Positions 1,701-48,305 of a stretch of DNA of 64,000 bases are shown piece after piece; the first letter of the stretch is position 1; every line of letters begins with the position of its first letter. A model generated the notes under the pieces. It was given only the letters and a program-made list of their open reading frames with translations, did no database searches and was not told the DNA's origin. The DNA is taken from the NCBI GenBank assembly GCA_977030845.1, contig OZ365118.1, positions 17,794,001 to 17,858,000 of the forward strand, in the 5' to 3' direction. The position numbers and the translations under genes are program-made. This stretch comes from Fimbriosthenelais zetlandica (taxonomy: Eukaryota).

Positions 1701-1766
1701 TTTTGTCTTTCCTTAATTTCAGGTGAGTGTGAGCTATTATTCCACAAATTTGGTGAAGGTAGGAAT
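1701..1766 (+). other. Recursive splice site 1 (AG 1721-1722 | GT 1723-1724) with a 36-nt cryptic exon
   Basis: Sequence ttttgtctttccttaatttcAG|GTGAGT. A downstream donor AAG|GTAGGAAT has its GT at 1759. Confidence 0.75.
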
Positions 1767-3817
1767 TCTTAAATATTTGAGAGAATTATATTTAAGATAT
1801 CGATAATGAAGAATTTTATTTCATTTTGAATGAATTTAAGCACACATAAAATAGGATTGCACTGTGCATAGCAGTGCACCATCCGGGAGTCTAGGTATGA
1901 TCCTATAGGCTCAGATTACCTGACTGAGTAGATTATCAGATTATCCGGGCGTTAATCCGCCTTCTAATATAACACCCTGGAGCATTATACCTGCAGCAGA
2001 TCAGTTTGCCTATTCTCAGACACGCCACCAGAGTCCGGGTATCATGGGGGTCATTTAGGCCATATACATGAATCCCCTGACTATAGGCTACCTGCACCTC
2101 CACACCTGAGCCCGCCCTATCCATCTCTATCTCTTTCCATTTGGGACTCGGATATTTGATGGAATGATAAAAATATCTGTTTTTCACTGAAAATATTCGT
2201 TGCACAGATGTTGAATGAACATGGCACAGCTGAAGATCATGACTGCGTGCTTGAAATAGTCTGCACTTAAAACATGCTGAAAAGACTAGGCCATAAAATT
2301 ACTTATAAAATGTATATATATTTTTATGAAACGCGCTGTGCATTATAAGAACATAATGGAGGATGTTGCTGCATCTGTTGCATTTGACAAAGGACAATTA
2401 ATGGCTCTTTGCATTGGAGAAATGGAGGTTAGCCATGACAAGTGCTTTCCTATCCAGTTTATGGACTGATAATATCAAAATTAATGACCAGATGTGAAAA
2501 AAAATAGAGAAAGATATGACTGCCAGTCAAGTGAGTCCATGTTAATGAGTGGGCCAGTGATGGGGGATAATAGTCAGGTCTGGTAACACTAGTCTCAGTG
2601 GTCCTCACTATGGCAGGCTGTAACTCGGTGTTTAAGTCGTTAAACATGTTAATTCCTCATGCACGGCATGGGGTGTGCATGCCTTACATGCTAATACTGT
2701 GAACATGTATTTTCGTGCAAGTAAAATTTCAGTGCCCCTTGAAAAATAATAGATTTTGCCTCTGTCTCTCCCATAAGAAAGACCATACAATATGTATTGG
2801 ATCTGAAAAAATGCCTTTGTCCATTTGCCCAGTTGTCTGGAGCTTTCCCCCAAGAGGAAAAATTGCAAAAAATTGATTCAATCAAAATTTGTTGTTGACA
2901 TTGGTGGGAGACAGGTGTGATAGCTGCTGTAGGTCCAGACTACTCAACATGTCAATCAGTAATTAGGTCAAATTCAATTTAGATTAATTGAAACCAATCT
3001 GATTCATTAATATGGATTTTTTTATTATAATCTTCCTCTGACAGAGCAGAGCAACCTTTCCTGCATGTTAAAATGCAGTGTAAAATATTGCTTGCATAAT
3101 TTGTCCTCAGTCTTTGGCCTTTACGATTTTAATAATTTAGATTTATTAAATAGTTAAGCTGTTTTATCTGATATCCTTTTACTCAGAGGATGCCTCAGGG
3201 TGGGTGAAAGTTGCTTAGCAAGCATAAAACCATATTTTCTTTGCCTTTGAGCAACCATACCCATTTGTAGAATCTGTGAGACAGTTTGGGATCGTGTCAA
3301 CCATTGGTTTCACATAGTAGAGACTGACTCCGGCCAGGATGGAAGCACAAGTGCTCAATGACCCTCAACGTGTCAGACATGTCTGGTATTCCATGCTTCA
3401 TGCTAACCACCTCCGCCTTACAACCCCAAGTCTCGGCGTCTCCCGATGTCCACGTGTTCTCCCAACGTGGCTTCGCGAGATTTCTGCCCCTAAGGTCATC
3501 TTTCACATATTTTCCCCGATAAAAGAAAACTTGAAAATTTGAAACTTGAGAAAAGTTTCTCCCAAGCAGAAAGATACTTTGGAAGTTATTTATTCGGCTC
3601 AATATTAAAGTGAAAGGGTATTTTCATCAGGTTTGAAACTTGAGTTTTCTTCTGTTTGGTTTGCTGTATATAATAGCGATATGAGAGTGAGATTAAGCTT
3701 TGTTGAGTGCATGTTGATATATGTGTATGAGAGGGAAAATTATAATAGGTTTTATAACTCCACATTGGAGCCATTGTCATCCACCCTCTCAGAACTCTCA
3801 TGTCAGACATGCTTGCA

Positions 3818-3890
3818 CGGAAGTACGCCAGAACGCTGGGAAGGCGAAGGCGCTTACGTCACGCCACAGCGCTCTCTGATTGGTCAATAC
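3818..3890. promoter_or_regulatory. CpG-retaining element with ETS, CRE-like and CCAAT motifs
   Basis: CGGAAGT at 3818-3824, TTACGTCA at 3854-3861 and CTGATTGG at 3876-3883. Confidence 0.35.
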
Positions 3891-6800
3891 AATCACATGG
3901 CCTTCCATAAATCATACTAGCACATCTGCTAGAAATTTACAGGGCCCTCATGCCACATTTTAGGGCATTTTTCACTTGACCTGTTTAAAATTTTATCTAA
4001 AAAATGTCGCTTATTATCAGAGGTCCTCTGATTTCTTTTCCAAAGAAATTTTCCAGTTCAATATGATGATTAGTTGGTTTTAATACATGAAAGGAAGGCC
4101 AAACAAGCATTATGTGTTCTCATAATTTATAACCCTGGCTTATGTGAGGGGTGGCTAATAATGGGTGAATTGTAATGAAGCGTTCTTATGAATAGATCAT
4201 GGAATTTCCTTCCATATGTGCCTCACATGTGAAGTGCCCATCTTTCATGCACCATTCACATTGTGTCCGTTGAGTGATGGTTCACACTGCCTCTCTCAAT
4301 ATCGCCAAACACGCTTCATACTTGACACAAAGCAGCCCAGCCTTCAGATGATGTCTATTGAACAAAAAAGGCCCTGATCCACTAAAACTTAAGAAGGTCT
4401 ATCAATCGGTTGACCACTTGGAAGATATCCACATTTTGGGTACCTCCCTTGCAAACCCCTCCCCACTCTTAAATTTAATTTATAAGTTTTCACCCATAAT
4501 AATCTTTGGGCGAGGATTTAAGTTGCAATAGTGAGACTAGGCCTTAACCTATGACACCTCATGCCTTGTTGAATCATGCTCAGCAGACATTCCACCATTA
4601 AAATATACATGTACATGTATAAAGTACAAGTCATCTCTCTGCTAAGTTTCCTTCCCCCACCCAATAAATCCATGGCCTGACGATGTGATACAACCCAGAC
4701 ATGTCCTGCCAACCATTCCTTGACTTATACTGCTTGCCAAGGCACTGGCTACCCATTATGACTTTTTTGTCCAAGATATCTTTGATAATGGCATAAGCAA
4801 AGACCTGTTGCATGTATTCTATGCATTTCATGTATATTTACGATTTTTTCTGGTGAATTTAATATATTTTCCATGAAGTTCTGTCTTAAATTGAATACTC
4901 TCTGACCATTAATATGCATTTGATACATGATGATTATATAGGGTTCCATCAGAGAGTATATCTCCTGAGAGCTTACGCCATGCCTATTAATCAAAAGCGT
5001 TGAAGGCTGGCAGGACCTGGTATATATTCATCACAATATTATCATCTCCCGGGTTCTGTCCTTCACGAGACTCTATGAAATAAATGCCATGAAGAAGTTA
5101 ATGCTATAAACCAGATTCTCCTGGATGTTCCGATTTTAACTTAATCACTTACTGAATGAAGCCTTGCAGCAATCCCCATCAGAAAGGGCATGAGGATCTG
5201 TGCCATTTTGCAACCAAAGTCTTCTAGCTCATAAATGTATACAGTCACAGCCTTTTAACCGTAGCCCCACACATGTAATTCAAACCTGGCACTAATTTCC
5301 TGTGTTGTGGACATATACGACCTGCGTCTGCGACTTATATGCCTGTTTCCCTTCACTAATTTGCCTTCTCGTTGCCATAGAGAGGGCCAGAGATAAGATA
5401 GAGATAATATTATGGGTGTATGGGCCATCAAATGCCCGCGGGCGCCATGTTTTACCATTTCCCTGCCCACACCAAAGTGAGTCAACATCCTCCTCTATAG
5501 CTCATTTAGTGCCGCTATCGCCCGCTTGGAGTGTGGGTGTTGAGTGAGCTGCTCGGTGATTTGCTCACCAGATGGCGCGCTGGTGACAGACGAGGGGTCA
5601 TTAGGAGCTTTTTGCCGTGACCTCTGTACAGCCCTGGGGGGAACTTCGGGTAGGTCTGCCATGCATTGTAGGTATGGTTCTGTTACACTGGTTCCACAGT
5701 ACAAGGATCTTCTTTCAGGGTACACAGAGGGACACTGGAAGTGATCAGGCAACCTCACAAATCAATCCGCCCTCGGGCATGGTCCCGTTTCCGTTTTCTC
5801 AGAAGAAATCTTCATGTTATATGCGTTATCTTCTTGAAAACAATTCTTTACCTTTAGCTTATTTGAAGTCATTCTTTTAGAATCATACTTGAATGTTGAG
5901 TCAATTAAATGTAATCTTTTGATCCACCATTTCATGGCGGTCATAAACCGTGGGCTGCCCCCACATCACAAGTGTTTATCTCGACTACGCACCACACCCT
6001 GAGAAGGGTCCTTGAAAGGCAGGCCCTAAATAAGACCAAGTGTTGAATGATATTGCAGTGATTAGTGGTACCGGGGGTCCCCCTACCCCCGGTCCAGCAC
6101 GCTTATTTATGAGCCATGTGTTTGGTCTATGGTAGAGGGAAACAAAGGAGGGTTTGTCACGTTGGAAATTCCAGCATGAATTTCTAGACATGTAGATAGA
6201 CTTCAAACAGATAACAGGGAAATATATATCACTTCATTACAACAATTTTCATTTTATGTTCGTCTGGAATCTTCATCTTTCACCATAGTCTTAGGCCTTA
6301 GAGTAAAATGATTGTGCTCCAAGCTTGAATAGATGGCATCTTATCAATGAAGATGTTTGGGATACTTTATTTGAATGAAAATTTTGACATATCTTGGAAT
6401 TTTCCCAGTGAAATTAAGTGCCAAAACATTGAAGTTCTAGATGATAAAATACCAGGGTATTTTGAAATATTTGTATTGTTTTATGATAAGGAACCCGTCT
6501 CAAATATCATTTTATCATTAGAATGAAATGTAAGCAACCAGAGCTGCAGAGATAAGTGAGAATTGTTAAAATTCTGAGGTCCCCGTGTCAGTTTGTCTCC
6601 CTACCCCCTACCCCGACTCCTGGGTGGTCGGAGGGTGACATGGGGGACTTTTAATTTCACGCTCAGGTCAGAATTAATGAATTCATTTTTCTTAGTATGT
6701 GTCACAAGTCAAGTTCTCTGTCAGAAACCGCGCCCTTCTAAACCACCATATGTATCTCTGTCACAGATACAAGTCACTGTTGACACCAGTTTGTGACAGC

Positions 6801-7178
6801 AAGGAAAATGCATGAGTTGTGACACGAGAACATATTCAGTGCTATCCCAAAGCCTGAACCTAGAAATAAGATATTTTCCTAGTTGCTTGCCTGTAATGTG
6901 ACATTAGGCTGTACCTTTTCACTGATATGATGATTCCGTCTGACCGTGTACCTGTTATGGGTGTTTGTGTACACGCGTGTATCGTATCTCACCCACCATT
7001 ATGGTAGCAGCCTATATTGTGACATGTTAAAGCCCACCACTCAATGCTGCACCATGTCGCCATGTGAATACATGTGGTATCATGTCTGTAGAAACAGGTA
7101 ACTCTATAGCCACCCATACCCGATACAACGATGCCACCTGGGTGGGCACGGGGTGGCATGTCATAAGAATACCTTCAT

Positions 7179-7435
7179 AAAAGAGGAAGGGTGAGGGGAC
7201 AGAGAGATAGGAGTGAGAGGGAGGATGGACAGGGTTGAGGTTGGGGACAGAGAGGAGGGAGAGGTGAGAAGAGGGAGAGTGGGAGAAGGAGGAGAGAGAA
7301 AAGAGGGAGAGAGAGTGAGTGAAAGAAGAAAGGAAGATATAGGCCAGTGACATGAAGAGAGAGAATGAAAGGGAAACAGGGATAGAAAGTGGGAGAGAAT
7401 GAGTGAGAAAAGGCGAGTGGGGAGAGGGAGAGAGA
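7179..7435. repeat. GA-rich (purine) low-complexity tract
   Basis: About 250 nt that are almost entirely A/G. It explains the spurious S/L/P-rich minus-strand ORFs. Confidence 0.85.
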
Positions 7436-8070
7436 TGACCGTATGCATGTTTCCCCTATCATGGAGCCCCCCTAGTAGGCCTATATATCTATCATTACAT
7501 CTTCTATTACTGACTAATCCTACCCCCTACTGCTCGACGTCCCTACTGTATCACCCCCAGTCTTATCACTCCCCGAGACGCCATGACGTCATACTGTTCA
7601 CAACCCACCAACATCAAGCTATTAAAATTTCAGATTTATTGAATTTTAAATGAATTAAATTTGATCACATTTAATGATTTTCTGTACGAGGTAGCCCCAA
7701 AACAAAATGTTTGATCGAAAACCATACATTTTGGAGTTTGGGAATTTCAATGCTGGTTCTGCTTGAGAAATATAATGTGATTAATTATGTAATTACTTTG
7801 TATTTAATCATGTACTATACATATAGTTTACTATGGTTCTCACGTCCCCTGTCTCCGGGGCTGGGACCCACACATGCACCTTTGTACACCTGTGAATTGG
7901 TCCCTCTGACATGCTACACCAAGGCCCGCTGAATGTGGAGTAATTTTTCATTATGTGAAATATAACGTTTCGATTCAATCTACTCCCTGTAGTTGGTAAA
8001 CATATTAAAGTGTTAACTTTCTCAACCGATCTTCTTATAATGTACATGGGAGATCCGGGCTCTCTTATAC

Positions 8071-8200
8071 CATCTCTCTCTTTCCCCCTCTCTCCGTTAT
8101 GCTCTGAATGTTTCACTGACCTACCCTTCCCCTTCCCCTCCCCCTCCCCATACAACCACTATACCATCTCCCCTAACCCCTCCACCAACTCCTCCTCTAT
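8071..8200. repeat. CT-rich low-complexity tract
   Basis: Pyrimidine-rich, with ccccttcccc-type units. Confidence 0.7.
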
Positions 8201-10092
8201 TCAAACCATTGAGGGAAAATGTCCATATATTCACATCTTTGAGAGAAATGTCCATATAACAGTCAAGTGACTGGCCATGTAACAATGAGGCTTTGGCTTT
8301 CTCTAGAAAAGAACCATCTGGAAGAAAAATATGAGACGGTACTTAGGATATCATGTGAAAATTTACATAAAATGTATACCTCCATTATTCATATGATATC
8401 ATGCAATTAGATATGTAAATTTGGAATTCAGAACATTTGTCGTTGGATTTAAATTTACTCATTTTATAATCAAAATCTAGACAAAATATATAATTATAGT
8501 AGGGACTGCGCTGATTTGTGGTTTATATATTAAGAAATAGACATTTACTTGGTATTTTCTTCTTTTCTATCATCATTACTTTGTGATTTATCTTCTTTTC
8601 GCATCCCCCAAACCTTTGAACCCTTGTGGAGGCGATGAATAAGATCCGAGTTAGCTTTGTGATTAATGTTAAAGATCCACCGTTCTCACGCTGCTACAAT
8701 GACCGATTTTACCCCATTCAAACCCTATTTAATCACCCCTCATCCCTAACATTAAAGGGCAGTCTTCAACCAACCGATTCCCCATCTGATGCCGATTTTC
8801 CAATTTCAAATTTACCCAAAATATTGATATAACAGTTTGGAAACGGCGACCAAAGAGTCCTTTCTGATATCATTATAAAATCCCCTGATATTCTTTTAAT
8901 GGAACAACCGATTGCCAACCGATGGGTTAATGGTGGATCCGGGGTCTAAGTGTCCAGGGTCGCAGCCAGGTCGACCTGTGTGGCAGTTTAATATTCATGT
9001 GGGACACACTGCGCACGGGATGTTAAATGACAATTAATTTTAAGAGTAGGACAGAAGTAGGACGGTCTAAGTTAGACCCCCTCTCTATACCTACCTGTCC
9101 ACACACCACCCATCCATCAACCCACCATATTTGTCTACCTCTCCATTTAAAAACTTTAAATATTTTGTTGATTCACTTTAGAAGTTTTAAGTCTTTCCAT
9201 TTATCAATGTTTTGTGCTATGGGCCTATGAAGGTGCACATGAAATATATATTTTTAAAATTATTTCTTTATCAGTTAGGGCAGGTAAAGTTGATAGAAAT
9301 TTATCGAGCCTTTTCGAGGCAATGTTGAGGATATACTGTTTAATGCTTTTCTCCTTAAATTAATTTCCTTGTGTCGAGTATTTCTCTTGGCCTCAGTACT
9401 GTGAAGACTGGTCAGCTGTGGGTGTGAAGGCTGGAGTGATGGAGAAGTGTCTTATCTGTAAGACGCAGTGGGTGATAAGGGTACCTGATATGGTCAGTTA
9501 CTGATAACGTCACTTCAGTGTTACCTTAGCCTTCCTACAGGTGTAGGACATACATGCAGGTCATTGGCAGATACCATGGCTCAAACTTTATATGAACAAA
9601 AATTGATATGGGCTTAGTTCATTTATTTATAATCAAATCAGTAGCCATATATATTCAGGGGTACAAAGGCAACCTTGTGTTATTGAAAAATTCTTGAATT
9701 ACATCAGCATGTAATTTCTACCCCAAAATCTTGTCTGTATTTAGTTGAGAAATTGTCCTTAAAAGAACTATTTTTCGTTGGGGAAGGAAATTCCACTGGC
9801 AGCCTGAATCAGGCGACTACCGGGCTAGCTGGAGTAGAGATCCCTGTGGAATATTATATGTGAACATACTGGAGTGTGGTATGGGTATGATCCATCACGT
9901 TTGATTCAGTGTTAACAAATTCTGTGTGTGACAGATGTTCATCTCGGATCATTGACTCCCGTCTTGAGGTGTATTGAAATGGGACTTCATCCACTGATGT
10001 GGCTGGTCACTGCCTTGCTATATTAATGCCTATATATTTGCTCGCCATATCTGACTGAGTAGTCTCTCCCGCAAGCCTCTCCTCCCCCACTT

Positions 10093-10095
<3 letters not shown>

Positions 10096-10126
<31 letters not shown>
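10096..10126. repeat. (TC)n microsatellite, about 15 units, inside a pyrimidine-rich block (about 10063-10320)
   Basis: Direct reading of the sequence. Confidence 0.95.
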
Positions 10127-10131
<5 letters not shown>

Positions 10132-10350
10132 TCTCACTCTTTCTCTTTCCATGTATGCCCCTGTTTCTACCCTCTAGTCACTCCCATTCCAGTACTCCCC
10201 AGTACTCCCCATTTTCGCATACTTTCCTGTCCCTCTCTCCCTCTATCTCCCATCCCCTGTCTCTTCTCTTTCTATCTCCCCACTCTCCTGTCCCCTCCTG
10301 CCCCCCCTTTCCTCCCATCTGACAACCTATGATAGAGGGGATACATTTCT

Positions 10351-10364
10351 GTTGCTATGGTGAC
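10351..10364. promoter_or_regulatory. RFX X-box-like element
   Basis: GTTGCTATGGTGAC, immediately followed by a CpG-rich stretch (10368-10440). Confidence 0.4.
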
Positions 10365-12855: not shown

Positions 12856-13296
12856 CTCAGCAGGGGGCCGGCCACCCTTGAAATTGTTACCTATCGAAGC
12901 TCAAAAGCTTTGAACTGTGGATGAAAGGCCCTGTCCAATCATAGGACGTGTTACATCACTGAGGAAGGAATGAGACACGTATTCCTATTGAACAGTGGCT
13001 CGTTAAGGTGTGAGGGCGTTCCCCCAGGGGGCCACCTTTGATTAAAAACGTCACATTCAGTTCTGAATCAAGCTCAATTGACGACCCTTCAAACCAGTGG
13101 GCGATATTAGAGGGATTTGTCCATTGACGCTGAATGATCCTGGGCGATATTAGGGGTAGAATCCCATTTAAAGCCGGGGTATTGTTATTTGAGGTTCCAG
13201 GAATGTGTCCCTGCCAATTACGAGAGGTGTGGACTGGGTAAGGGGCGGAGGTCACGTCATAGGGCATCTAGACCCTGTCATGACGTGAATGACCTC
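12856..13296. promoter_or_regulatory. Dense putative cis-regulatory module
   Basis: CTCAGCAGGGGG at 12856, T-box AGGTGTGA at 13006, two TGGGCGATATTAG copies (13098, 13141), GC box GGGGCGGAG at 13242, inverted TCACGTCAT/ATGACGTGA (13252, 13280), and AGGTCA/TGACCT half-sites (13249, 13290). Confidence 0.45.
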
Positions 13297-16200: not shown

Positions 16201-17730
16201 CCTTTTTACCTGACTAATTGGACAATTAGTCCGGGGAAAGTTACAATGAAACGGACTTTATTTTGGATGTATTGTCCAGTTTCTACATTTGTGACTTGAT
16301 TTTTGTCATGAAATTCCTCGAACATGGACAATAAAATACTTTGAACTTTAAACTTAATTTCGTTCATGCCTTCAATTGCTTTTAGTACTTAAAAAAATTA
16401 ACATATTAATATATTTCTCGTTGACCAACTCAGTTTGTAGTCAGAGATTTTTCTCTAAGCCTTAGTAAGGTGGAAAGAGATTTTTGGGCTTTGATTAAAA
16501 CAGGACTGGTCACAAAGCAGAAATGCCGCCAAGATTTAAAGAGAATGAAAGGTGGGAAAAGCAGCAGTCAAATATTTGCCTTACATCTGTGTATGCCATG
16601 GTGGTTGGGTGAATGTTTAATTCATTGCCGCAGCTCTTTGCTGTTGAACATTAGCAATGGAGGAAAACGGACCTAAAAGCCTCGACCTATTACAAATACT
16701 GCCCTGCCCTCTTCCTCCCACATTCCCCCGGCCTAAGCAGGCATTGGTGTAAGCCTCAATGCATGGGTCTCAATCCGTCCACCTGGCTCCGCCATGCACT
16801 ACTCCTATTACCTTGTAAATTCACCTCAGGTGTTAGATTCATATGTTGTGTAATGTCATCTCAAAGTTTTTCTATTGCATATTCATAATTGAATGAAATC
16901 ATCTGGGATTTCGCTCGTTTTTATAGGTAAATCTCAAATGGTTGTTTCATTGCTTATTTTCCAAGGCTGTTCTTTTAATATTACATTATTTTTTTCTTTT
17001 GTTTACTAGATATGACTGTATTAACTTTATAGTTATCCCTCAGGGCAGCCAAAGATATATGAAGCACATTCTAATTTTATATTTCCTGCCATTTGGATAT
17101 TTCTAATTCCCCAAATTTTATGACCTGCTCTCAAATTGGGATCAACATGAAATTTCTAGGACTAGTGCCTTCTAAATTATTGCTAGGACTACAAGAACAA
17201 TATAACCTTTTTCTTAAAATTCATTCATTTGCAAACGTTGCAAGACCAAGATTTTTTGTCTTTCAAAGGACAAATCTGAATGAACTGCTGAACCTACACA
17301 AAGTCATTTCTTAGAAAGTATATGAGATAATATTCTTGTAAACTTATGAAAATTTTTTCTGTCTCTGCCCACTCTGTAATCATACTTTCTCTTGGCCTTG
17401 TCACCGTCCTTCCCACTTCACACTGTAAGGTGTGAAAGGTAAACTGTAGGATCACCAAAGCTAAGACTCCTACACGAGCAGCGAGTCAACAACAAACAAG
17501 GAGCGATATGCTCCACATAGTGTAAACTAGGTCACAATGCCCGGCTCTTTGTCAACTACCGTTACTGCGGGCCTAAATGTCCAGTGGTAAACCACTAAAA
17601 AGGCTTCCTTATCACACCTGTTTTTTTTTGTAAATATTTTTTAATTGATGAGTATTTTATTAGGGTCAGATTGATTAATGACGTTTGGAATTATTCCATT
17701 AAATGAAACCTGTTAAATACCCTCCATGTA

Positions 17731-17808
17731 CTCATGCGTTTTCTCTTCTTTTTTATTTTAGGTGAGTGAAAAATTGTTCAGTTTCGTGGTATTTATTATT
17801 GTAAGTAT
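17731..17808 (+). other. Recursive splice site 2 (AG 17760-17761 | GT 17762-17763) with a 39-nt cryptic exon
   Basis: Branch-like CTCAT at 17731-17735, then ttttctcttcttttttattttAG|GTGAGT. A downstream donor ATT|GTAAGTAT has its GT at 17801. Confidence 0.8.
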
Positions 17809-23103: not shown

Positions 23104-23209
23104 GTTTCCATGGCAACGGTCATGCAATCATTACACAAAGAGGGTGGCATGGAAGAGGGGGAAGAAAAAGAGGGTGGGGGAGAAATGTCCCAGGGTTACC
23201 CGAGGTAAC
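23104..23209. promoter_or_regulatory. Pair of RFX X-boxes
   Basis: GTTTCCATGGCAAC at 23104-23117 and GTTACC-CGA-GGTAAC at 23195-23209. Both fit GTNRCC(N0-3)RGYAAC or its common GTTTCC variant. Confidence 0.5.
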
Positions 23210-23216
23210 CCCTCAT

Positions 23217-23261
23217 CCCCCCCCCCCCCCCCCCACCTACCCCCTTCCCCCCCCCCCCCCC
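23217..23261. repeat. Two poly-C tracts (C19 at 23217-23235, C15 at 23247-23261)
   Basis: Direct reading of the sequence. Confidence 0.9.
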
Positions 23262-24260
23262 TCCCCCTCACCCCCTAACCTGAGATTTCCTGACGACCAC
23301 TCTGAAATGCTAAGGTTGTCATAGTTACCGAGCATGTAATCCGTCAGCCAATACCATGTACTTGAAGCCATGGATTCGGACCCCGACTGCTTCTGAGATT
23401 TTCTCATGCTTTTCAATGCATGCCCCCAGAAAGCCTGTAATGGTACCCCAAGCAGAAAAAAACCGCTTGGCCTGTCCACGCAAAGTAAATTGGATCCTAC
23501 AATTCTTGTAGAATTTACTGACCTTTGGTTTCGAAAAAGAAATTGGAAAAGCAAGGAAAGTTGCTAACCTGGTTGTTAGAATTTGAAGCATTGCACCAAG
23601 GTGGCAGGGAAAGGGTGAGTGCCACCCCGGCCCCCATCTTACCCCCTCCCTCCTTACCCCTACAAATGAATGGAGATATTACTTCCAGTATGCTGGGTCC
23701 ATATAGGGGCAGAGGGAGAGAGGGAGAAAGAGAAGGTGGAGAGCATTGGTACAATGCTTCACTGTTGTCTCAACACGAAGAGCACACAATCATCTCTGCT
23801 CCACTCTCCTCCCAAAATCCCTTACGGTTCACTCATATACCCCTCACCATCAAAATATGCACAACATTCCAATTACGGAGGACATATAAACTATTCTGTG
23901 CATTTTGGTTAAGTTTCTAGAGTCTATTGTTACTTAAATTCATTGGGTTCTACGTCAGAAGTTATTGACTTAATATGAAGTCTAAATATATAGCCTTAAT
24001 ATCAGGATTCAATATTTAGATTAAATTTATGTAGATGGGCACAGTATGTAAATGACCTTTCTTCTTTCAAGCCCCTCTGATTGTTACACTCTCTGCCAAC
24101 TTGTCTTCAGAGCGGCACATCAGAGCCTTGTCATACTCAGCCTATTAGTTTAAATTATGACCATGAGGTGTCACACGGAATAATAAGCTTTTATGGGGCG
24201 AGGTGATATCAAAGCGTGAGATATGCTCGCTTAACATGCATTCTGCCCCTTTGCCACTTC

Positions 24261-24326
24261 ACCCCCTACCCCCTCACACTACCCCCTACCCCCTCACACT
24301 ACCCCCTACCCCCTCACACTACCCCC
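24261..24326. repeat. Minisatellite, 20-bp unit ACCCCCTACCCCCTCACACT x 3.3, perfect
   Basis: Units start at 24261, 24281 and 24301, plus a partial unit at 24321. Confidence 0.95.
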
Positions 24327-26184
24327 GCTCCCACCCCTCCTCCAGAACCCTCGCGCCATGTTAACCAATATAAATCATTCATAATTTGCCCTCATTCCTC
24401 GCCCCTGGTCCTCCCCTCACCCCAGCCACCCCTCGCTCCCAGGTGAGTGGAAGGAGTAGGCAAGGGGTGAATTAACATGAATTAAACTTGCTCCATATTT
24501 GGTCAATAATTATCTGCTCTTGTGGCTTATAAACATATACCCTTCCGACTCTTTCAAGTCTAAAATCATGAAATATCTTAAATCCATCAATTCTAAGCCA
24601 ATTCTAAGTTTGTTTTTAAAAGTTACCACTGGTTTCATTTCCCCGTCTGAAGTTTGTTCATGGTCCACCCCACTGTAATGGAGCATTTGTTTTCTTCATG
24701 AATTCCTAGTAAACTTCCCTCAAAATAGTCCCTCGACGATTAAATAAAACACAAGTTTTTCTCTTGTTCAAACAGGTTTCTCTGTCGTTCATCACTATGT
24801 ATATGTGGCATTCCCACAGTACATGTTAAAACACTTATAAAAGGAATTGAAACTGAATGTGGCTGGAGGGTAAGGAGAGAGTGAGTTGGGAGTCCTCATT
24901 TAAAGCATGATTTATGGAGGTAGAGAATGGCATTACAGAAGAATGATTTGTATTCTCTCACTTTAATCACTGGTGTCGCAGGCTTTGACCTGAGAAACAA
25001 AACTGTGGCATTTTCCTGCATGGCTCCAAGCCAACTCCGCCATGGGTTCAAGGGGCTGGGGGTGGGGGCTGAAAGGGCACAAGGAATATATTACTCCATA
25101 AAGTTATGAAAGAAATAATAGGAAATTTATAGGTATAAAGGTAGCATGTATTGTAAGCAGGTCTATGAATAGCGAGGGAAAATTATGGGGAATATTTGGG
25201 AGGACGTGGGATGCGGGTAGGAAATTGTGCTCTAGTCTCTAATTTATATTGGTGGGGAAATAGTGAAGACCATTGTGTCCCAAAACATTCGCTATTTTTT
25301 GCACAAGAACTGCTGCTAACTGGGAAATCAAGGCTAGCCACTGCCTAAGCTGAGAAGCATGTTTAAGTCCAGTGATAGCTGAAAAATTACTGACTGAACA
25401 CCTAGATTCATCCACTTTTCATTTGGGATGAAATAGCTGCACAGTGACAACTAGAGATGACTATGTGAATTTTTACTCTCTCTCGCTCTAGTATTATAAG
25501 GGGGGAGGTATAAAGGACTATTATATTAGCTGACGGGTAACCTGGGTGCAGCTCATCAGATGTGGGAATCAGACCCATTAATCCTCACAAGAAAATTAGC
25601 CAAAATACCTCCTTTGATCCTCGCTCTAAAAATGGATGTGTGAAAAAATGGGCCCAAGTGCCTGCCTGATCGAATGAAGATATAGGCGGATAGGACGCGA
25701 GAGATAGCATCTCTGGTCGGTGGTAACATGAAGAAAGACCCCGTTATACATTACATGGATATGGTGTGCAGCGAAAAAAAAACAAGAAAAGTTTAGAAAA
25801 TCTCCCAATCTGCTTATAAAATACTGAATTACATACCATTTGTTTTTGCAGTAATATATAGATTCTTTTCTATTAATTCAAGCAATATTGTTCAGTTATT
25901 TGAAAGAATCCACCGTTTTTAAAATTAGATTTATCTGTGGATGAATAATAGCTCAGTTTGGTCGTTTTGATGGCCATCACCTCCGCGGATCACTCGGCTT
26001 TAAGAAGCGTTATTTGATTAGGAGCAGATATATATCTGCGGCATAATTAACTCAAAAAGAAAAGCCATTCATCAAGTGTTTATTTCAACTGCAATTAGAT
26101 AATTTATCTTTGATCTGAGATGGATTGAGACCCGAGTGAGAAGGTGGCACGATTGAAACATATAGCTCATGCTTTTCTATGTAA

Positions 26185-30037: not shown

Positions 30038-30109
30038 CACTAAATCTTTTTCTCTTCATTTGCAGGTAAGAACATTCGCAGTGCTTCAATGAGTGGTAGT
30101 GATAAGTAT
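30038..30109 (+). other. Recursive splice site 3 (AG 30064-30065 | GT 30066-30067) with a non-canonical U1-like site 36 nt downstream
   Basis: Branch-like CACTAAA at 30038-30044, then tctttttctcttcatttgcAG|GTAAGA. Downstream is GTG|ATAAGTAT (A at 30102). Confidence 0.8.
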
Positions 30110-34650: not shown

Positions 34651-34754
34651 CATGCGCACGAGACACCGGAAGTGGATGCGCGGGGATGTCCTCATGATGC
34701 GAGGTGAGGGTCAGGGATGAGGAATGAGGTATCCCTTAACGATAATCACGTGAC
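34651..34754. promoter_or_regulatory. CpG-retaining element with NRF1-like, ETS and E-box motifs
   Basis: CATGCGCA at 34651, ACCGGAAGTG at 34665-34674 and TCACGTGAC at 34746-34754. Confidence 0.4.
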
Positions 34755-37320: not shown

Positions 37321-37530
37321 AGCAGGAAGGAAGAAGGGAAAGATAGGCTGCGTATTGGAGAGTTTCACCCTGGAGGTGGGAGAGAAGGAGAGAGAGAAAG
37401 GCAGTCTCTTCAAATATAAATTGAGACGTGAAAGGAAAGAGAGAGTATAGAGAAAAGCCTAGGCTTAGACAGGAGTATAGAGGACGGATAGAGAGAGAGG
37501 GAGAGGGAGAGAGGACAAAAAAGAACAAAA
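37321..37530. repeat. GA-rich low-complexity tract
   Basis: Purine-rich stretch. It explains the spurious L/S/F-rich minus-strand ORF at 37295-37555. Confidence 0.7.
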
Positions 37531-40500
37531 CAGGTTGTGTTAGATGAGGCATCATGTCACTTTCCTGTAATTAGGTCAACCATCTCAGTCTCTCTCTACT
37601 AAAACGAGGAAAAAACATCCACAAAGCTGTCATTAACCTAGGAGGCATCCAAAGTGACGACCAAATTATCTAGTTGCCAAGACCCCACACGTTATCAAGC
37701 CCCCCTTTCTCCTTCCTTTATGCTTTCCTCAACTAAATTAATCTGAGAAAATAGCCCAAGTATCTGTTTGAGAATTATACTGTGATATCCCAATATTATA
37801 TTAACTTCCAACGGACATACTTATCTCAAAGTATTTCAAGTGCGTTTCAACTTTCCCTAGGGCACATCACTTTTCATGAAACTTTCATGGAAATTTTTTT
37901 GAATATTCATTTTTTCCCTCGTGCACTCTTGAATAGGCTTCTCGAAATGAACAACTCATCATTCAAAGGTATGGAAGGTCGATTCCTGTGGTAATCAAAT
38001 ATTACATATAAGAGGGTGTAGAAATGGTTTTATTCAGTGAGGCAGGTCGCTCGGTTCACTTGTATTTGTCATGAGCGGAAACCCTTGACATCTATTCATA
38101 AAATACTCATAACACACGCATACATACATATATATGGTGATTCCTGTGTGTGTATGTATGTGTGTAGGGATGGGTATACGATGTGGAGGTGTATTTACTG
38201 AATGACTGACAGGTGCATTTCTGTTTTTGTCATATTAAGCTTGATTAAGTGATGTTTATAATAGTGTTTCAATATTATACAACCCATCGATCCATATTAA
38301 AACTTGATGTATCATGAACCATCAGAACATGACATAGAGTATTTGAAGGCCTGAAAATCCATCCTGAATATAGGTTAATTCTTCGCTATTTGGGCCAGAG
38401 ATTATCCTTTTGTGTCCTTAAGAAAAACTGAGGGTATAGCCATCACAATAAAATCGACACAGTGATAATCATTTTGGGTGGAAATCATATAAAGCAGGAG
38501 TGCTCACACGAGGGGCACTGTAGTGCATATTTAGCCAGGTGTGCACAAGTAGGAGTTATTTTATGCTATGATTAGTGATTTCTCTATGGATTTGGCACTA
38601 CTTTCACACCTCGGAGAGGGAGAGATACAGGTGAAAGGGAGTCCATCTCAGCAGGGGGTCAGTGAGACTGGGCGAGGGTCAGCCAAGTCCAGGGTGGTAG
38701 AGACCTAGTGTTTTAACCACAGAAAAGACACCTACTCATTACATATACCCACTCATTGGTGTTAGGTGTACACATGTATTCACTAGATAAGCACTAGGAG
38801 AGCCAAAATCTCAATGTGCATACATCTGTGGTTGTGCATTTACATTGGAGACTCCATGCTGGGATCTGATGGATCCAGATACTCTACTCTGTCCCTAACA
38901 TCTTCATCATCAGGCCACAAAATTAATGTTTTGTTTCATATCATGGGAAATCTAAATATTTTGAATAGAAGGCCCATTAAGTCATACTGCCTACATTTGA
39001 AAATCCCTCCAATTCTATGGTAATGAAATCCCTAATTTCTGCTTTGGTTTTGAGTAAAATGCATTTCAAAGAGAGATCTTCGTAGGCCAAAGTCTGTCCA
39101 TAGTTTAATTTCCACTTTTTGTTGCTTAACCATGTGAAAAAGCATCATTTTTGCCCTGGCCTCATGAGGTATCTAATACAAGTATAAAGGAAGAGATGAC
39201 GGTATAGAGACGTGGGTTTATAGGTCCATCACTAGTGTATAAAGCGTTACTTTGTAGTGCTCGCCGCCTCCTTCTCTCTCCCCATTAGCCTATACCTGAG
39301 ACTACCCGCCAAGATCAACACCTTTCCTGCCAACTCTCTATTGTTCACCTTCTATCCATCTTGAGATCAGTATGGGTCAGATGCTGCCTCATTGGCTTAG
39401 TACTTCCTAGTCCGACCCAGCTTTCATATACTTTATCGCATAGATATTTATGAATTGACCAAATAGATTTTGGTTACCATATGTCCTATACTTGTGGAAT
39501 TTCCATGCGAATACGCAGTTCAAAGTATTGACCAGATGATGGATATTCTGGGCTTCAAATGGGCAATTGAATTGATTGCTTTCATTTAGAAATTTTCAAA
39601 TTTGGACAGATGGCGCTTACATGTCAATGCATGTTTAGTTGGTGCTCCGAAATTGAATTAGAATAGTTTTAATTTTCAAAGCCCCCCAGTGGATTACTTA
39701 ATTAATTGTAACACATGTAGGTCAATAGAAATAGAAATATAGCAACCGATTTATATGTTTTAAACCAACATAAATGGTTTTAAATATCACTGAATGCTCT
39801 TGTGTGAATTGTGACATCTAGTGTCAACGATTGTCAGCTTAATTCAATATTACCTCAATTTGTTCCCCATGAAGCTGTCAAAAAATCTTTAAGCTGTTTA
39901 AAGATATTTCAATGATGAATTTATTACCAGAATCTGCTTCATTAGGGCTTCTAATTTCAATAGTGAAGGCTTGTTTTGAGCTCGTTCACAACTCCAGATG
40001 CCAGCCTGATACGTCAGTGATGTAACGTATTGATGTGTATATGACGTAAGCAATTGTTGTGTAGATGAGGTCATCGTTTTCAGCGTACCTCAGATGCTAT
40101 CATTACGGGGTTCGCCCCGCGATGGCCACCTGGTTGAAGAGGGTCATTTTCAAAACAAACCCCTAATGAAAAATCTATTTCGATTCCTTCTTCCTGATCT
40201 TTTTCCCATCAAAAATCTAAATGAACCATAACGTCCTTCACTTAATGACTTACAAATTGTTATTGTATACATTAAGGAGTGTTTCCCAGAAGTCTTGCTT
40301 TCTTATATCAAGCTAAATTGCCCCATTAGCAGTATTTTGACAGATTTTGGCACAAAAAGTACAAGAGAATGGTTGAATGAGAGAGAGAATCAGAAAATAT
40401 ATCCAAGTCCAGGCTACTGGAATTACGCTGTACAAAGGGGCGAGAGACAGTGTTGTGACACCTAAATGGCAGGGGGTAGCTCAATGTCCAGGTGTGTATT

Positions 40501-43500
40501 GGGTGGGGGACAATGCACTGGTGAGTAACACCACACTACTCACACTGTGAGTAAGGGTATCCATGTGTACGTATATATATGTGTTAGTTCACATGTGAAA
40601 AAAATAAAACTATTCATGAAAAAATACTGCACAATAGCCCATGTCCGAGCAACGAGAAAGAACCAAGCTGATGTTAAACATTAGCCTTACTTTCAAAACA
40701 GTTTAGACAATGGATTTGGATACAGTTCATATATTTCAAGACCTCGGACACTCTAAGGTCAAATACACATTGATCAGGTCAATGAATTCCCTTCAATCTT
40801 AAAAGATATCACCCTCAGCCCCTCCCCCTGTCCTACCCAGACATTCCTCAATAGCTCAGAGACAAAAGCAACCTTGGCAGTCCTTCCTATTACCATTGGT
40901 GGTCCCTTCCCTTGTGGTCACCCACTCTTTTCCTACTCCAGCCAAAAGAAATAATATCATTCTTGGCAGGACAGAATTTATGGCCACTTCCAACCCCTTT
41001 TCTATTGTATACAGAAGCACCCGCCATCTTATAATTTCCTGGTATTGTATTTTACTTGTGGTTTTAATTTTAAAAAGGCTTTTTGAAGTATCTCAAGCAC
41101 CTGTCTCTAATTATGACCGGGTGTATGGGAGGTCTGGTATGGGAGTGGACAGCGGAGCATGTGATGTGGGCTGACCATTTCTTGTATGGATATTTCATAT
41201 CCTGTTGGGAAGACACTCTATTGGCTGCAGATGCCAGATCGAGTACTTAGGTAAACCACATAATATCTTCTTCTGAACATATTAAACGCCGTCTCTGAAT
41301 ACAATAACTTATTCTGGAATTGGCTATACATTTCGGTTCACTGGATGGAAAAAATATCTATGACTTTTTCTAACATACCTGTCGCAAAGAGAAGTAAAAG
41401 TCCTAAGGAATATGAATGTGAAGGACTACCTTATAATTCTTTATGAATTTATGGAATTAAATACTGTGAAAAGAATACAAGCTGTCATCTACTGCGACCC
41501 CTCCCATGAGCTTTTTAGTAAAGAATTCTTATTTTTAAGGGGAAAAGAACTCGCACCTTTGTCACAAACCATTGTCACTAGTGTCATCGCTCGGTCGACA
41601 TATGACAATAGGTTTTAACCAGAATATGACAACATATAAAAATAGCTGGCAATGTTGGGATGGATGTATGCCTTGATTTCATTTGCACTGAATACAAAGG
41701 CTTGTCTTCCTCCAAAAATCATATGCACATTAATTATAATGGTGGGACTGAGATGGGGCGGTATTGGGGGTATATGTAAATGTATATAAGTTGTGTTAGT
41801 ATGTGTGTATATGGAAATGTGTGAGTGGTAAGTGTGAAATGATGACACACGGTTAGAATCCACATCCTGAGTCGCACCTATTGCCGTGGTTGCCTATTGA
41901 TGCCTACCTGTGAGTATAATGGTTTGGGGGAGAGGTGAAGGGGAGGAAGAGGTGAGGTGAGGGGAGGAGGAGTGGGGGGAATATACCTGTATGCACTAAG
42001 TGACCCACCTGAGCGCTCTTACCTGGCCGGGTAGAACAAACCCACTGTTTGTTAAGCACCCCTTTTATACCCTCTCTCTACACAAAGTCACTTGTTATTT
42101 TACCTTATCCAGATTGATAGTGATAAAGCTATTGTGATCATATTAATAAGTGCATTGTGTAATTAGTGGCATAAAGGATAGGTTCAAAATCTCAAGTGCT
42201 GAGAGGGAAGGTCAGGGAGGAAGCTCGTAATATCTACTAGGAAGTATAATATCTACTCTTGTGATAAAGAGAAATGGAAAATTTCTAGAATATAATTCCT
42301 ATCTTTATTTTCTCTCTCTCTCTCTCTGTCCATATCTATCTCCCTGCCTGGTAACTGACACACAGGAAGAATATCCCACTATAGATTGGTCGCTGATCAT
42401 TTCCATAGCAACCGATTGGATTTAACTCTCAAGCGGTGCCTTTAAAATCGTCTTTACTTTGGATTATTTCCTCCACCTCAACCAAACTAGAACAATGATA
42501 TCTTATCGCCTGGAGGGAGGGGACTACCGGAGTGTGGTAGGTCTGAGGCTATCAAAGGGAGGAAAGGGGAAGAGGGATTGAGGGGGAAGAGGTGAGGGGA
42601 CTAAGTGAGTTATGACTTGATTGCCTTTTATCTTCAATGCCCTAATTATTCCCTCTGTGCTATGCACGGCCATTCTTTCTCAAGGCATGACCACAGAGTC
42701 TTTCCCTCAGGGAAGACTCAAAATTTGCGCTTTTGAAATCCTTCCGCTGAATAATCATTGTTTAAAATTAATCTGGTTGTCCTTGTACCTGCCCAATTAA
42801 AAGCTATTGGGCTTGGATGTTTGGGGGAGGGTCTTTGCCCTTCGGTTTATGGAGGGGGAAGTGTGGCTTGGGTCAATGGAGGGGTCAGGAAGGGGGGCAC
42901 AAGCATCGCTTTGAGGGAGGTGAAACGAGGAGCGGAAGAATTCACTCATTGTGATGTGTTCATCACAATCAAGCCTGCACTACACTAACTCTAACCTATG
43001 ACCTCAGGCTCTCACAATACGGCTGTAATTAGAAGAATTTGGGGATAAAAATCTACCTTGAATACCATAGGACAATGGTGGTATACTTAGCAATATATTA
43101 CCCCTATAAAATTAATGATGAAAGAATAATTTGGCCAAATTGAGATGTCCTCTTGGTATTTGTTGTTATTCTGAAAGAACCTCAAGGAAACGTTCATAAT
43201 AGACTACATATATATATTATGAACATTTAATAATTTTTAAAAGTACTGGCGAAAATGCTTGAATTTACTTTAGTAAAATGTTCTTGTACTGGTCATATTC
43301 AGTTTTCTGTAACATTTTTGGATGACTTTCATTTTGGGTGACTTTCAGTACATTACCTGTTAGGCAGTCACAGCACGCGCACCTTTTATAAGGGCATGAA
43401 TTTGGACAAGAAAGGAACTTTAAAAAACCTGGAGTAAAGAGAGAAAGAATGTGTTTTTGGCAGAGAAAGAGGAGAAGATCCAGAGAGTGCCTGCTATTGA

Positions 43501-43946
43501 GTGAATAGGTTCAGATTTAGGACAATGATATATCGTTTAAATACACCTTGCTATGGAAAGATAAGAAAATTTTCCAGGCACTTAGCTACAGAAAGGAAAG
43601 CTTTTAAGATGGGATAGGGTATTAATTGCAGTCTTTGAGTGAGGATAGAGGGGTTCAGATTGGTGTTGTGATATTGTATATGGATCTGAAACCTTTCTAT
43701 TGAAAATATGTCAGTTTGATGATAGATGGGTATATTGAGCGGGGTGTACTTGTGTTTCTCAAGGTTTCTCAGTTAAATGGTTTAAGTCTTAGGCTGTCAT
43801 GTATTCGTGGGAAGATGCACGACTGTCCAGGTAACATTGTCTCTCTCCTGTCTATTTATTTGTCCCTGTCTCTCGATCCCTCCTTCTGTCGCAATCAAAG
43901 TATTTGCATTTTATATGACCAGGTCTTTCTTCAGTAGATTCTGAGG

Positions 43947-44013
43947 ATCCATCATCTATCCATCCAATCTATCCATCCATCTACCAACCCATCCACTATA
44001 CATCCATCCATCC
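43947..44013. repeat. Degenerate (ATCC)n microsatellite
   Basis: atccatcatctatccatccaatctatccatccatctaccaacccatcc...catccatccatcc. Confidence 0.8.
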
Positions 44014-47000
44014 CTTCTCTGCCATAAGGGATCCTGGAAGACTATACACCATATAACATTACACATTACACAGGAATGGTACAAGTCTAGGACAGCTCAC
44101 AGACACGCACATTGCCAGCCTGAGTGTGTCACTTTGCACGCATGGCTTCTTCAGGCTCGTCGAGTATAGAAAGTTCTGTCCACTAAGTTCACAGTTATGC
44201 ATGGTTGAATCCCCCCTTCCCTCCCTCCCCAATCTCTCCCCATTTTGTTGTGTCTGAAGCCATGGTGGCCATTTACTCATAGGCTTTTTTCCGTGTCATG
44301 TTAAATTATCTAACCACCGCCAACGGTCGCCACCGTCTATAGTCAGATTTTTTCGTGTGGTAAGAATTTAAAGAACATTCTCTCACATTTCTTCTTCAGC
44401 TCTTTGTGAGCACTGAAAGTGGGACAAGTTTGAGTGAGGCTATGTCAAGAAGAAAACCTGACAACAAATTGGTTTTGAACATGTTGAACTGAATAACTAA
44501 ATGTGCGAAGAGAGAGAAATGCAGTCGAGGATTGATGGGCATATATTTGAAACACCAATCCCTTTCAAGTCCACTCATAGGTGCAATATATCATTCTGAA
44601 AAACACTATCTGAGAGACTCATTGACGGACAGCTTTCCATGCACTATAATTGGAGTTTCCAGGTTGTCCCTGGCATATTGAATGGCGTAGTGAAGGTGAT
44701 GTTTTGATTTGGCTTTAGTGAAACGATTTCAGGAGCCCAAAAGGTGTCAAGTGGAGCTTGTGACCATACAAATCATATCGGCAAATATCTGTCATTGTTC
44801 GTGGTAAGAAAGTGGCCATATAGCCGCGAAACTCTCACAGAGCAAAGCTTGACAGCTAATACAAGAAGCTGCCCTCTCCCACTCGCCTGAATTAAACTGA
44901 TTCTTGATATTCTTTTGTAGTTGTGTAAAGAGATTGATGGGGTTTATATGTTGAGCTTCAAAAAGCACGCTAGCGACATCTTCAGGGCCCTAGGCTTACT
45001 ATTGCAGTGGCCTGGATTTCTTGGGTGATGCCTTTCACCAATACAAGTTATTAGTTTGTTGAATCCCTTCCATCTTTTCTCCTAATTCTCCAAAAATGTT
45101 AGATATTGAATTAAAAGAACATTTCATCCAAGTTATTGGCGATCTATCGGTATATCACGAAGTCTGAAAGACTGCGATTGTCTATACGCATGGTATAGAG
45201 AAGTTTGACCATACTTTTCGCCATGTCCTCCTAAAAAGGCATTCCTCTCTGCAAGTATACTCTGGGCATGCGCTGACATTGCTCTCGTTACGTTACTATG
45301 GTCCTATATGACGTAGAGCACCACTCACCGCGACAACCGTCACCCAAACTTCCTACCCCGACCTTAATTCAATCTAGTATCTCTCCCTGGTTGGGACAGC
45401 ATCCTGACTGAAGTACCAGAAGAGAGAGACAAGCAGAAAACTTCATTAGGCTAAACAAAATGTCATGTATTTCATAACATTTCATATGTATATGTCGTTT
45501 TTGAGCTCATAGCATTTCAAAATTATCCTAAAAATAAAGGAACACACGAGATTGGTTTATCATGGAATGCTGTACACCCCTGATAGAGTGTCAGAAGTAA
45601 TTTTTCTCTCGGTGCTTTCTACCAGAAACAAATAGTTTTTCTGCTCGGCTAAGTCAACCTGTCGATAACCCCAACCAATCAGGCAGCTCAGACTGCTCAT
45701 CAGGGTTTGTTCATGTCTCTGCATGGCCTCACTGATCAAAAACCTTCATACCCATTAACCATCTAGAAAATGTCCGAGTCTACCATATGACAAACTCTAT
45801 AAATACTGTTCGGAATAGTCGCCTCTTTTGACTAAGAAAATCCACTTATTGGCAGTCTAAAGGGCTTTCAATTCAATCCCAGCATCTGCCGCTTCTCTTG
45901 ATGCCCCATCCATTTTCAAAGTTTTCCTAACAGCCTTCCCAGAATGCACCTTCATCGAAGGCCTGTCGCAGCAAATAATCCCCCTCCTCATCACCGGGAT
46001 GTCCATGGAGAATATTCTCCCCGGAGGCGGAGTGGCCTCGCTCTCATATCGATGTATTCTAGTACAATGGTCGCTCACCAGAGGTCTCTATGACGGCTAA
46101 TGTCTTTAACCTGGCGGTTCAAGCGGAAGGGAATTCCCAGTCCAATTTGATGATTTGTTCTGCAGAGAAGGGCCTCTCTGTAAAGCCCTCTCCGCCCCTG
46201 GAGAAAAATGCCCTCTCTGGTATGACGATGGGTCCCTCTGGGTATTTCTTAGCACCCTGCTATGGTCCAGACCCTAGACATACCATTGTTGGTGTGGATA
46301 ATGCATTTTAACAATGCTTTTTATACCAAACACAAAAGTGTGATTATTGAAAGGTGCTCTTTGTGGATGGCCTTCACCACAGAGAGATCTGGAGGCATCG
46401 GACTGTGTAACACCAACATTATTTTAATATCTGCACTTAGTTTTGAAGCAACAGATTTGTGATCCGCTGCTCAAGGCTCGAAGTTAAGATTTTACATAAT
46501 GTTTGAAGGGGGTTATTGAAGTGTTCGTATGCCTATTCCAAATGGCAGATTTCATAATCTTCCAATCATCCGAGATGGCATAATGCCTGCACGTCACAAC
46601 CAACACCTCAACACTGAGAGTTCACCAATTTCACGCTAGGGTGAAGTGGTGCATCCTAATAGGTCTAAATTTACTGCTGTCTGGCCTGGGGAAAAAGCCC
46701 CTACCTTCTATGGTATAAATGTTATGGTCAGATGACCCTTTTGTCCACTGCCAACCATTGGCCAGGACAACAGGTACCTGTATGTAGTACACCTTCGTCC
46801 TAACAACCACTGAGGCCCAGGGTGCTGAGGGCAAAAAGACACCCACAATATTGGCTGCTTTTGAAGATTCAACTTTGCAGTTCAATTTACTGGGTGGAAA
46901 TATGGCTGTGAACTTTGCTCATTTTCCACCAGTTGCAATAAATGTATGATATTAGATCAATGTCTAATAGATCAATGATCCGCAGCAAATATATTTTTGT

Positions 47001-48231
47001 TTAGAATATCAAACATGCTCTTGAAAAATCCCATGGCTGGGAGCTAGGAAATACAGTCCCTGATTCCCATTGAGCACAAAAAGTACTTAGCCAAGTATGG
47101 TGGAGTTTCTATTTAAATCAGCCATCAATGTCTTGTGTGATGTGTTTTTACACTGGTTATAAATGCCTTCTACATCGACCAGCCACTCCTATCGTTGGCT
47201 TCCCACTCCCCCTGTGGCTTCCGTTCTAAGGCAGTTAAATTGTCCTTCTCTTCTTTGATCTCCCAACTCTTCTCCATCATCTTCTTCAAGTGGCCCTGCC
47301 CCTGGGGGAGTTGATGTCTTACATGCATGCTTCCTTGTCTAAGACTTCTTTTCAAGGATCTCTTCTTACCTCTCCTTCTACATTCTTCACTTGCCGAGCC
47401 TTTCTAAGTACTCTTTCTTTGGTTTAATACCTCAAATTGTTAATGTCATTTCGTACTTCAGTCAGATAGTAGTTCAACATCCTTCAAATATTGTTGAAAA
47501 GTATGAGGGAATTTGTGTGAGAATCTAGTGATGGGTCAATAAGGGTGGATGGAGTAGCTTGTAAGTTACCCGCACTATGACACACCTGTTCCCCTGATCC
47601 CACACCCCTGACTCACACCTGAATTATAGCCCTCACCTGAAAACCTCCCACTCCGGGGAGCCCCCTGCCCCTACCACCAGAAAACACGGGGTTAAAAAGT
47701 GGAATGATGATTGAAGGGAACAAAATGGACATCTCTACAATAAAATGCCTGTCATACGATCCCTCCAGATCGGTCTCTTTAAAGCCTCCCTCCATGCCCT
47801 CGGGCTACCTTAGCTTCTTCCAAAATTGTCCCCAACTTCTAGTTTTACTTCGACTTTCGTAACAATATCTAGACTTATGGCCTATTTGCCGTGGCTTTTC
47901 CGTTAGTATGTCCAATCGTACACCCTCATTTTTTCAAATGATCATTTTTCATATGGGAAATCAACATCATATCTGCCCCCATGTCGCGGGGTCGGAGGTA
48001 GGGGACTTGACCGCCAGATGGCCTAATCATAATGACGTGGCAATTTTCATGTCATCTGACGATAGATGGCATTCCTCAGTATAATCACGTGTTACCTCTG
48101 TATGATGCCTTATGTTCCCCACTAAAATTTCCACCGCTTACTTCACAGAACCTGTCTCTGCCATGTTCGAAATTCATCTATCACATCAAATTACTCCATC
48201 TCTCTGACTGATATGAATAGTCTGTACATAA

Positions 48232-48305
48232 TACTCAATGGCTTTGTTCTTTTTCTTTCCAGGTACGTGAAACACTTGATATCGAGTTGGTGTGAAGCTA
48301 AGTAT
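48232..48305 (+). other. Recursive splice site 4 (AG 48261-48262 | GT 48263-48264) with a non-canonical U1-like site 35 nt downstream
   Basis: Branch-like TACTCAA at 48232-48238, then ctttgttctttttctttccAG|GTACGT. Downstream is AAG|CTAAGTAT (C at 48298). Confidence 0.75.

Follow-up and report, generated by a model that had tools for sequence, protein, structure and literature searches.

Four predicted recursive-splicing sites in a giant cadherin intron of Fimbriosthenelais zetlandica

Recursive splicing in flies, vertebrates and other animals

Recursive splicing, the removal of an intron in successive steps, has been established experimentally in Drosophila and in vertebrates. To our knowledge, experimental demonstration is confined to these two groups, which differ sharply in the number of intronic recursive sites that they use. 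The subject of this report is a stretch of 64,000 nt from contig OZ365118.1 of Fimbriosthenelais zetlandica (assembly GCA_977030845.1, positions 17,794,001 to 17,858,000 of the forward strand), hereafter called the window; all positions are numbered from its first letter. The window is probably, for almost its entire length, a single giant intron of a FAT/dachsous-type cadherin gene on the plus strand, divided by four predicted recursive sites, or ratchet points, into steps of 12–18 kb.

The closest described systems are the ratchet points of Drosophila. There, TT is found at positions -5/-6 in 99.5% of ratchet points, as against 44% of all introns (Duff et al., 10.1101/006163), and the recursive segments have a mean length of 17.95 kb and a median of 16.4 kb (10.1101/006163). 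In the kuz intron, the ratchet points have been described as evenly spaced, and fly sites are characteristically conserved in sequence. In the model of Joseph 2018, as set out in PMC8605326, a tandem acceptor-donor is followed by a cryptic exon of ~50 nt (the recursive-splice exon, or RS-exon), and a donor downstream of it permits this exon to be defined; once splicing has taken place, the downstream donor loses out to the regenerated one.

The cadherin sites share much of this organization. They consist of directly abutting strong splice sites of the form (Y)nNCAG|GTRAGT (Burnette 2005; Duff 2015; Joseph 2018, all via 10.1101/006163 and PMC8605326), they have TT at -5/-6, their pyrimidine tracts are more pronounced than in ordinary acceptors, and they occur on the sense strand only, several to one very long intron and in segments of ~16 kb. 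Each is followed by a short putative cryptic exon whose downstream limit is a U1-type site, referred to below as the helper. On the other hand, the putative RS-exons of the cadherin array are 35–39 nt long and nearly fixed in length, whereas those of flies measure ~50 nt and vary; two of the four downstream elements lack a GT in the U1 register; and the cadherin sites are predictions from sequence.

Vertebrate RS-exon splicing (Sibley 2015; Blazquez 2018, PMC6224609) likewise depends on definition of an RS-exon followed by regeneration of a 5' splice site, which is the order of events proposed for the present locus from its sequence. The host genes of vertebrate recursive sites are also long cell-adhesion genes, and inclusion of the RS-exon leads to a premature stop, as it would at cadherin sites 3 and 4. 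However, long vertebrate introns usually have a single such site, and the known sites that are fully suppressed are few, nine to ten (PMC8605326, PMC6224609), whereas the four sites within 62 kb described here reach a density like that of flies.

In other invertebrates, Shepard 2009 (PMC2773006) computed an enrichment of ratchet-point (RP) sites on the sense strand of large introns, 8-fold in sea urchin and also seen in bee, beetle and mosquito. A recursive site has further been predicted in the locust NPF1 gene (PMC8892266). Like the present array, these are predictions from sequence in invertebrates other than Drosophila. The sense-strand excess of combined acceptor-donor motifs that Shepard 2009 found in introns >50 kb provides a common basis with the cadherin sites. 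Unlike the latter, however, the genome-wide figures correspond to 0.5–1 site per 100 kb and come without locus anatomy, compared with ~6 per 100 kb here, accompanied by helpers and regular spacing. A search of the literature collection consulted found no report of recursive splicing in molluscs, and the sole study found to have scored intronic recursive sites in sea urchin was the 2009 computation (PMC2773006). The earlier note on this DNA had placed the array in a lineage in which recursive splicing is uncharacterized; that claim is weakened, because enrichment of RP-sites had already been found in non-fly invertebrates (PMC2773006). The predicted cadherin array is a strong new example of a known mechanism and not something categorically new.

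Four predicted abutting splice sites in the window

The motif anatomy of the four sites, their statistics and their strand specificity are read directly from the DNA. Site 1 (1682–1728, plus strand, like the other three) has the branch-like elements TTGAT/TTAAT, with A at 1682 and 1686, and then a pyrimidine tract; its acceptor, tttcAG, has its final G at 1722 and abuts the donor GTGAGT (1723–1728). The acceptor of site 2 (17730–17767), ttttAG, ends at 17761; the branch-like CTCAT (A at 17734) and a long T-rich tract precede it, and GTGAGT follows at 17762–17767. In site 3 (30038–30071), the branch-like CACTAAAT (A at 30043) is followed by a pyrimidine tract, by ttgcAG ending at 30065, and by GTAAGA at 30066–30071. 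The pyrimidine tract of site 4 (48234–48268) is the strongest on the plus strand; the branch-like CTCAA (A at 48237) lies before it, while ttccAG, ending at 48262, and GTACGT, at 48263–48268, come after it. A strong 3' splice site therefore directly abuts a GTRAGT-like 5' splice site at all four, and the motifs that the earlier note had picked out (tttcAG|GTGAGT, ttttAG|GTGAGT, ttgcAG|GTAAGA and ttccAG|GTACGT) read as it gave them and lie where it put them.

From 1722 through 17761, 30065 and 48262 to the exon acceptor at 62185, the successive intervals are 16039, 12304, 18197 and 13923 nt, giving a mean step of 15.1 kb (range 12.3–18.2 kb), in agreement with the segment lengths of flies. Recomputation returned the earlier intervals and acceptor unchanged, and the even step of ~15 kb claimed from them goes beyond chance: the coefficient of variation is 0.147, and when three interior points are placed at random, ~0.5% of the arrangements are at least as even (P ~0.005). 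The four flanks are not copies of one another, and repeat searches found nothing in common between them beyond the motifs described in this report. Mobile-element copies were considered as a source of the sites and ruled out, and the window is without long repeats.

The earlier note had called for scoring of AG|GT sites on both strands, having itself found no minus-strand equivalents by eye. Every AGGT in the window, 279 on the plus and 298 on the minus strand (577 in total), was given a log-odds score built from the 16-nt pyrimidine tract, a pyrimidine (Y) at -3, and donor positions +3 to +6. With these generic weights, the four sites occupy ranks 1–4 of 577, with a clear gap to the remainder: site 3 scores highest (13.63), followed by site 2 (13.47), site 4 (13.15) and site 1 (11.28). 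At a threshold of 11.28, there are four sites on the plus strand and none among the 298 antisense AGGT sites, and both the absence of antisense equivalents and the dissimilar density of the two strands are thereby borne out. Markov simulations trained on the window at order 1, 3 and 5 produced means of 0.013, 0.043 and 0.053 sites per strand with a score at least this high, and never more than two. The same asymmetry appears when acceptors are considered first. Among 27 acceptor-like sites on the plus strand, four directly abut a donor-like GT, as against 0.07 expected (27 x 160/64000), while none of the 20 on the minus strand do so.

Three animal cadherin loci served as control DNA (166 kb, both strands); these are not orthologous introns. 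They are a Fat4-like locus of Glandiceps talaboti (L002), a dachsous-like locus of Saccoglossus kowalevskii (L003) and the cadherin-23 locus of Branchiostoma belcheri (L004). No site in the three loci, on either strand, scored 11.28 or more, the maximum being 9.8, and no ratchet-like site was found in the 35-kb intron of the G. talaboti locus (L002, 13814–48910). In that same locus (10001–63096), 47 nt separate the end of the Fat4-like gene model (1841 aa) from the following model, whose 2710 aa include cadherin, EGF and laminin-G domains; both look like annotation-split halves of a single FAT-type cadherin.

Three features outside the ranking criteria also distinguish the four sites, namely the AG-free zone, TT at -5/-6, and the downstream U1 element described further below. 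The AG-free zones upstream of sites 1–4 extend over 142, 90, 42 and 40 nt, compared with 8 nt for the median AGGT site, and every one of them contains a branch-like element 22–40 nt from the AG. TT is present at -5/-6 in all four. The pyrimidine fraction is 0.74–0.91 at the ratchet sites, against 0.65 at the real acceptor (62185).

The runners-up, at 24442 on the plus strand (8.56) and 41379 on the minus strand (9.07), lack both the long AG-free zone and the helper. The former was rejected as a member of the array, having an AG nearby upstream and neither a T-rich tract nor TT at -5/-6 nor a helper. It reads AG|GTGAGT and is weak, and it lies just beyond a perfect 20-nt tandem repeat (ACCCCCTACCCCCTCACACT, 3.3 copies, 24261–24326), itself ~1 kb past a low-complexity tract of ~60 nt that is mostly C (23208–23276). 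The latter, gcgacAG|GTATGT (within 41340–41400), is the best antisense AG|GT of the window; an AG precedes it by ~22 nt and no U1 element follows it, and it was likewise rejected, being consistent with chance.

The cadherin exon and its giant intron

The only cadherin coding sequence in the window is an exon of 202 nt (62186–62387, plus strand). It is preceded by the final intron acceptor (62140–62185), which ends in tttccAG and has a pyrimidine tract weaker than those of the ratchet sites, and it is followed by the donor AGAG|GTGAGA. The exon starts in phase 0 within the last strand and linker of an extracellular cadherin (EC) repeat (VHIKLLDQNDSPPIF), and the EC repeat together with the linker motif DxNDxxPxF identifies the host gene as a cadherin. 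Pfam Cadherin (PF00028) matches it with an E-value of 3.4e-6 and 27.8 bits, just below the cut-off of 28.8, because the exon holds only half a repeat. In a HMMER search of a representative library, 6384 proteins matched the exon at E <=0.001, with giant cadherins at the top; those that bear names are Fat4-like, dachsous-like and cadherin-23-like proteins. The best single-repeat identities, 44–51%, are to paralogous EC repeats of hemichordate and amphioxus proteins. These matches were rejected as orthologues, since they are ranked by summed repeat scores and reach just that identity over a single repeat. A word-index search with the 67-aa exon returned no candidates, exact look-up of the open reading frame (ORF) that bears the exon returned no record, and the sole metagenome contig to match it, at 33% identity, is too distant to be an orthologue.

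How long is the intron? The start of the exon falls partway through an EC repeat, which requires a further cadherin exon upstream, and this must lie outside the window: a tblastn comparison of 150 giant cadherins with the window found no cadherin coding beyond 62186–62387. The window also contains no sizeable ORF with protein character and, in an Rfam scan, no RNA family. With 1–62185 free of cadherin coding, the intron must be >62 kb long and must begin upstream of the window, and the giant plus-strand cadherin intron claimed by the earlier note is upheld. T exceeds A on the plus strand in most 2-kb bins, which is weakly in line with transcription of that strand throughout. All four sites lie on the transcribed strand, and on that strand only, of an intron far above the threshold of ~11 kb that applies in flies. 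A (TC)n microsatellite of ~25 units occupies 10096–10146.

Downstream U1-complementary elements and possible readings of the array

Each of the four sites is followed by an element complementary to U1, at an offset of +36, +39, +36 and +35 nt, respectively. When U1 complementarity was compared within +25 to +60 of 573 AGGT sites, sites 1–4 ranked 34th, 1st, 5th and 2nd. The helper of site 1 (1756–1766) reads AAG|GTAGGAAT, with +1 at 1759 (offset 36 nt) and a donor score of 4.47; its U1 complementarity is matched or bettered by 5.9% of AGGT sites. That of site 2 (17798–17808) reads ATT|GTAAGTAT, with +1 at 17801 (39 nt) and eight contiguous matches to the U1 complement. The helper of site 3 (30099–30109), GTG|ATAAGTAT, has +1 at 30102 (36 nt) and seven contiguous matches, with A in place of G at +1. 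At site 4 (48295–48305), AAG|CTAAGTAT has +1 at 48298 (35 nt), seven contiguous matches plus a match at -2/-1, and C in place of G at +1. All four helpers lie on the plus strand. A downstream element resembling a 5' splice site is thus present throughout, with a GT in the U1 register only at sites 1 and 2; a weak GT is found 4 nt past the helpers of the other two (TAA|GTATAT at site 3, TAA|GTATAG at site 4). The word TAAGTAT occurs six times on the plus strand, and three of the six are helpers.

These elements delimit the putative RS-exons. RS-exon 1 is 36 nt long (1723–1758) and consists of 12 open codons in frame 0, the phase of the intron, and RS-exon 2 (39 nt) consists of 13 open codons in the same frame, both having helpers that carry GT. 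RS-exons 3 and 4 contain an in-frame TGA (frame 0), and their helpers lack a GT in the U1 register, an association that, at n = 4, has no statistical weight.

More generally, AAGTAT is found 38 times on the sense and 23 times on the antisense strand of the window, and matches of at least 7/8 to GTAAGTAT number 30 and 18, respectively. This sense-strand surplus of U1-complementary words is not significant alone; it could reflect sites of U1 telescripting in a long intron.

At the level of RNA, we infer all steps at the four sites, as follows. U2AF and U2 would recognize the unusually strong signal of branch point, pyrimidine tract and YAG, and U1, bound to the complementary element 35–39 nt downstream, would serve to define a tiny RS-exon. 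The upstream cadherin exon would then be joined to the AG, and the junction would regenerate a 5' splice site, exon|GTGAGT, GTGAGT, GTAAGA or GTACGT, depending on the site. This regenerated site would drive the next step, the RS-exon being discarded, and the cycle would repeat until the acceptor at 62185 is reached. Removal of the intron would be stepwise, in at least five pieces. For the recursive-splicing reading of the earlier note, this means that all sequence-level tests that were run support it, while the stepwise removal itself is something that we still infer.

What else could the four sites be? That they are chance occurrences is scarcely credible. The original selection was indeed made by eye, and weaker AG|GT sites do exist at 24442 (+) and 41379 (-), but four were observed where 0.01–0.05 would be expected per strand, none of this strength occurs on the antisense strand or in the three control loci, and independent features that coincide at all four sites are missing from the runners-up. 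It is also highly improbable that they are landing pads for U2AF and U1 at which no splicing takes place, acting either as telescripting beacons against premature cleavage and polyadenylation or as 5' splice site tethers, in an intron removed in a single step. Every module does have two U1-complementary elements within 45 nt, and intronic U1 sites that act uncleaved are documented (PMC4387717). However, telescripting needs no branch point, long pyrimidine tract, YAG or extended AG-free zone immediately upstream, and all four sites have these.

More serious, and still unlikely, is ordinary alternative splicing, in which each of the four AGs would mark the start of a small cassette or poison exon of 36–40 nt and the GT that follows the AG would never be a donor. 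A possible downstream donor is available at +36 to +40 of every site, the open, in-phase RS-exons 1 and 2 could be cassette exons, and RS-exons 3 and 4, with their in-frame TGA, could be poison exons. Such exons would not account for the near-consensus donor that abuts all four AGs, against the 0.07 expected among the 27 acceptor-like sites, and their own downstream donors would be weak or, at sites 3 and 4, without GT in the U1 register. Moreover, an insertion of 12–13 mostly hydrophobic residues before the last EC strand would probably not be tolerated, and in flies an identical anatomy is recursive (PMC8605326).

Recursive splicing therefore appears the probable explanation, with several points weighing against it. 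At site 4, GTACGT makes a mediocre donor. The upstream exon, which would supply positions -3 to -1 of the regenerated donors, lies outside the window. The weights of the score are generic splice-site values, neither MaxEntScan nor species-specific. With their open, in-frame codons, RS-exons 1 and 2 might also be expressed as micro-exons.

Why should two of the helpers lack a GT? One tentative possibility, for which the odds are clearly below even, is that ratchet points in this animal carry a U1 docking site at a fixed distance (~36 nt) that need not be a cleavable donor. As part of the same tentative proposal, only TAAGTAT, which pairs with U1 nucleotides 1–7, would be kept, leaving +1 free (G, A and C at sites 2–4), and an RS-exon with a poison TGA and a GT-less dock would be definable and yet not easily included, a fail-safe. 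The two GT-less downstream U1 sites may represent a variant of the known arrangement, and the literature consulted on recursive splicing contains no such fail-safe variant for flies or vertebrates. There is a parallel to the helpers ATAAGTAT and CTAAGTAT in the functional intronic pseudo-5' splice site of Drosophila mod(mdg4), likewise a strongly U1-complementary element, for which recruitment of U1, not cleavage, has been proposed (PMC4387717). Unlike them, however, the mod(mdg4) element promotes trans-splicing and has no paired AG|GT ratchet point upstream (PMC4387717).

The array supplies exact coordinates for testing at the RNA level, and its GT-less U1 helpers raise the question of what exon definition at a ratchet point needs, the binding of U1 or a usable donor. 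If the recursive-splicing reading is true, a dense, fly-like array, with four sites in 62 kb and RS-exon helpers, would exist in another animal, which would suggest that this strategy for removing long introns is older or more widespread than flies.

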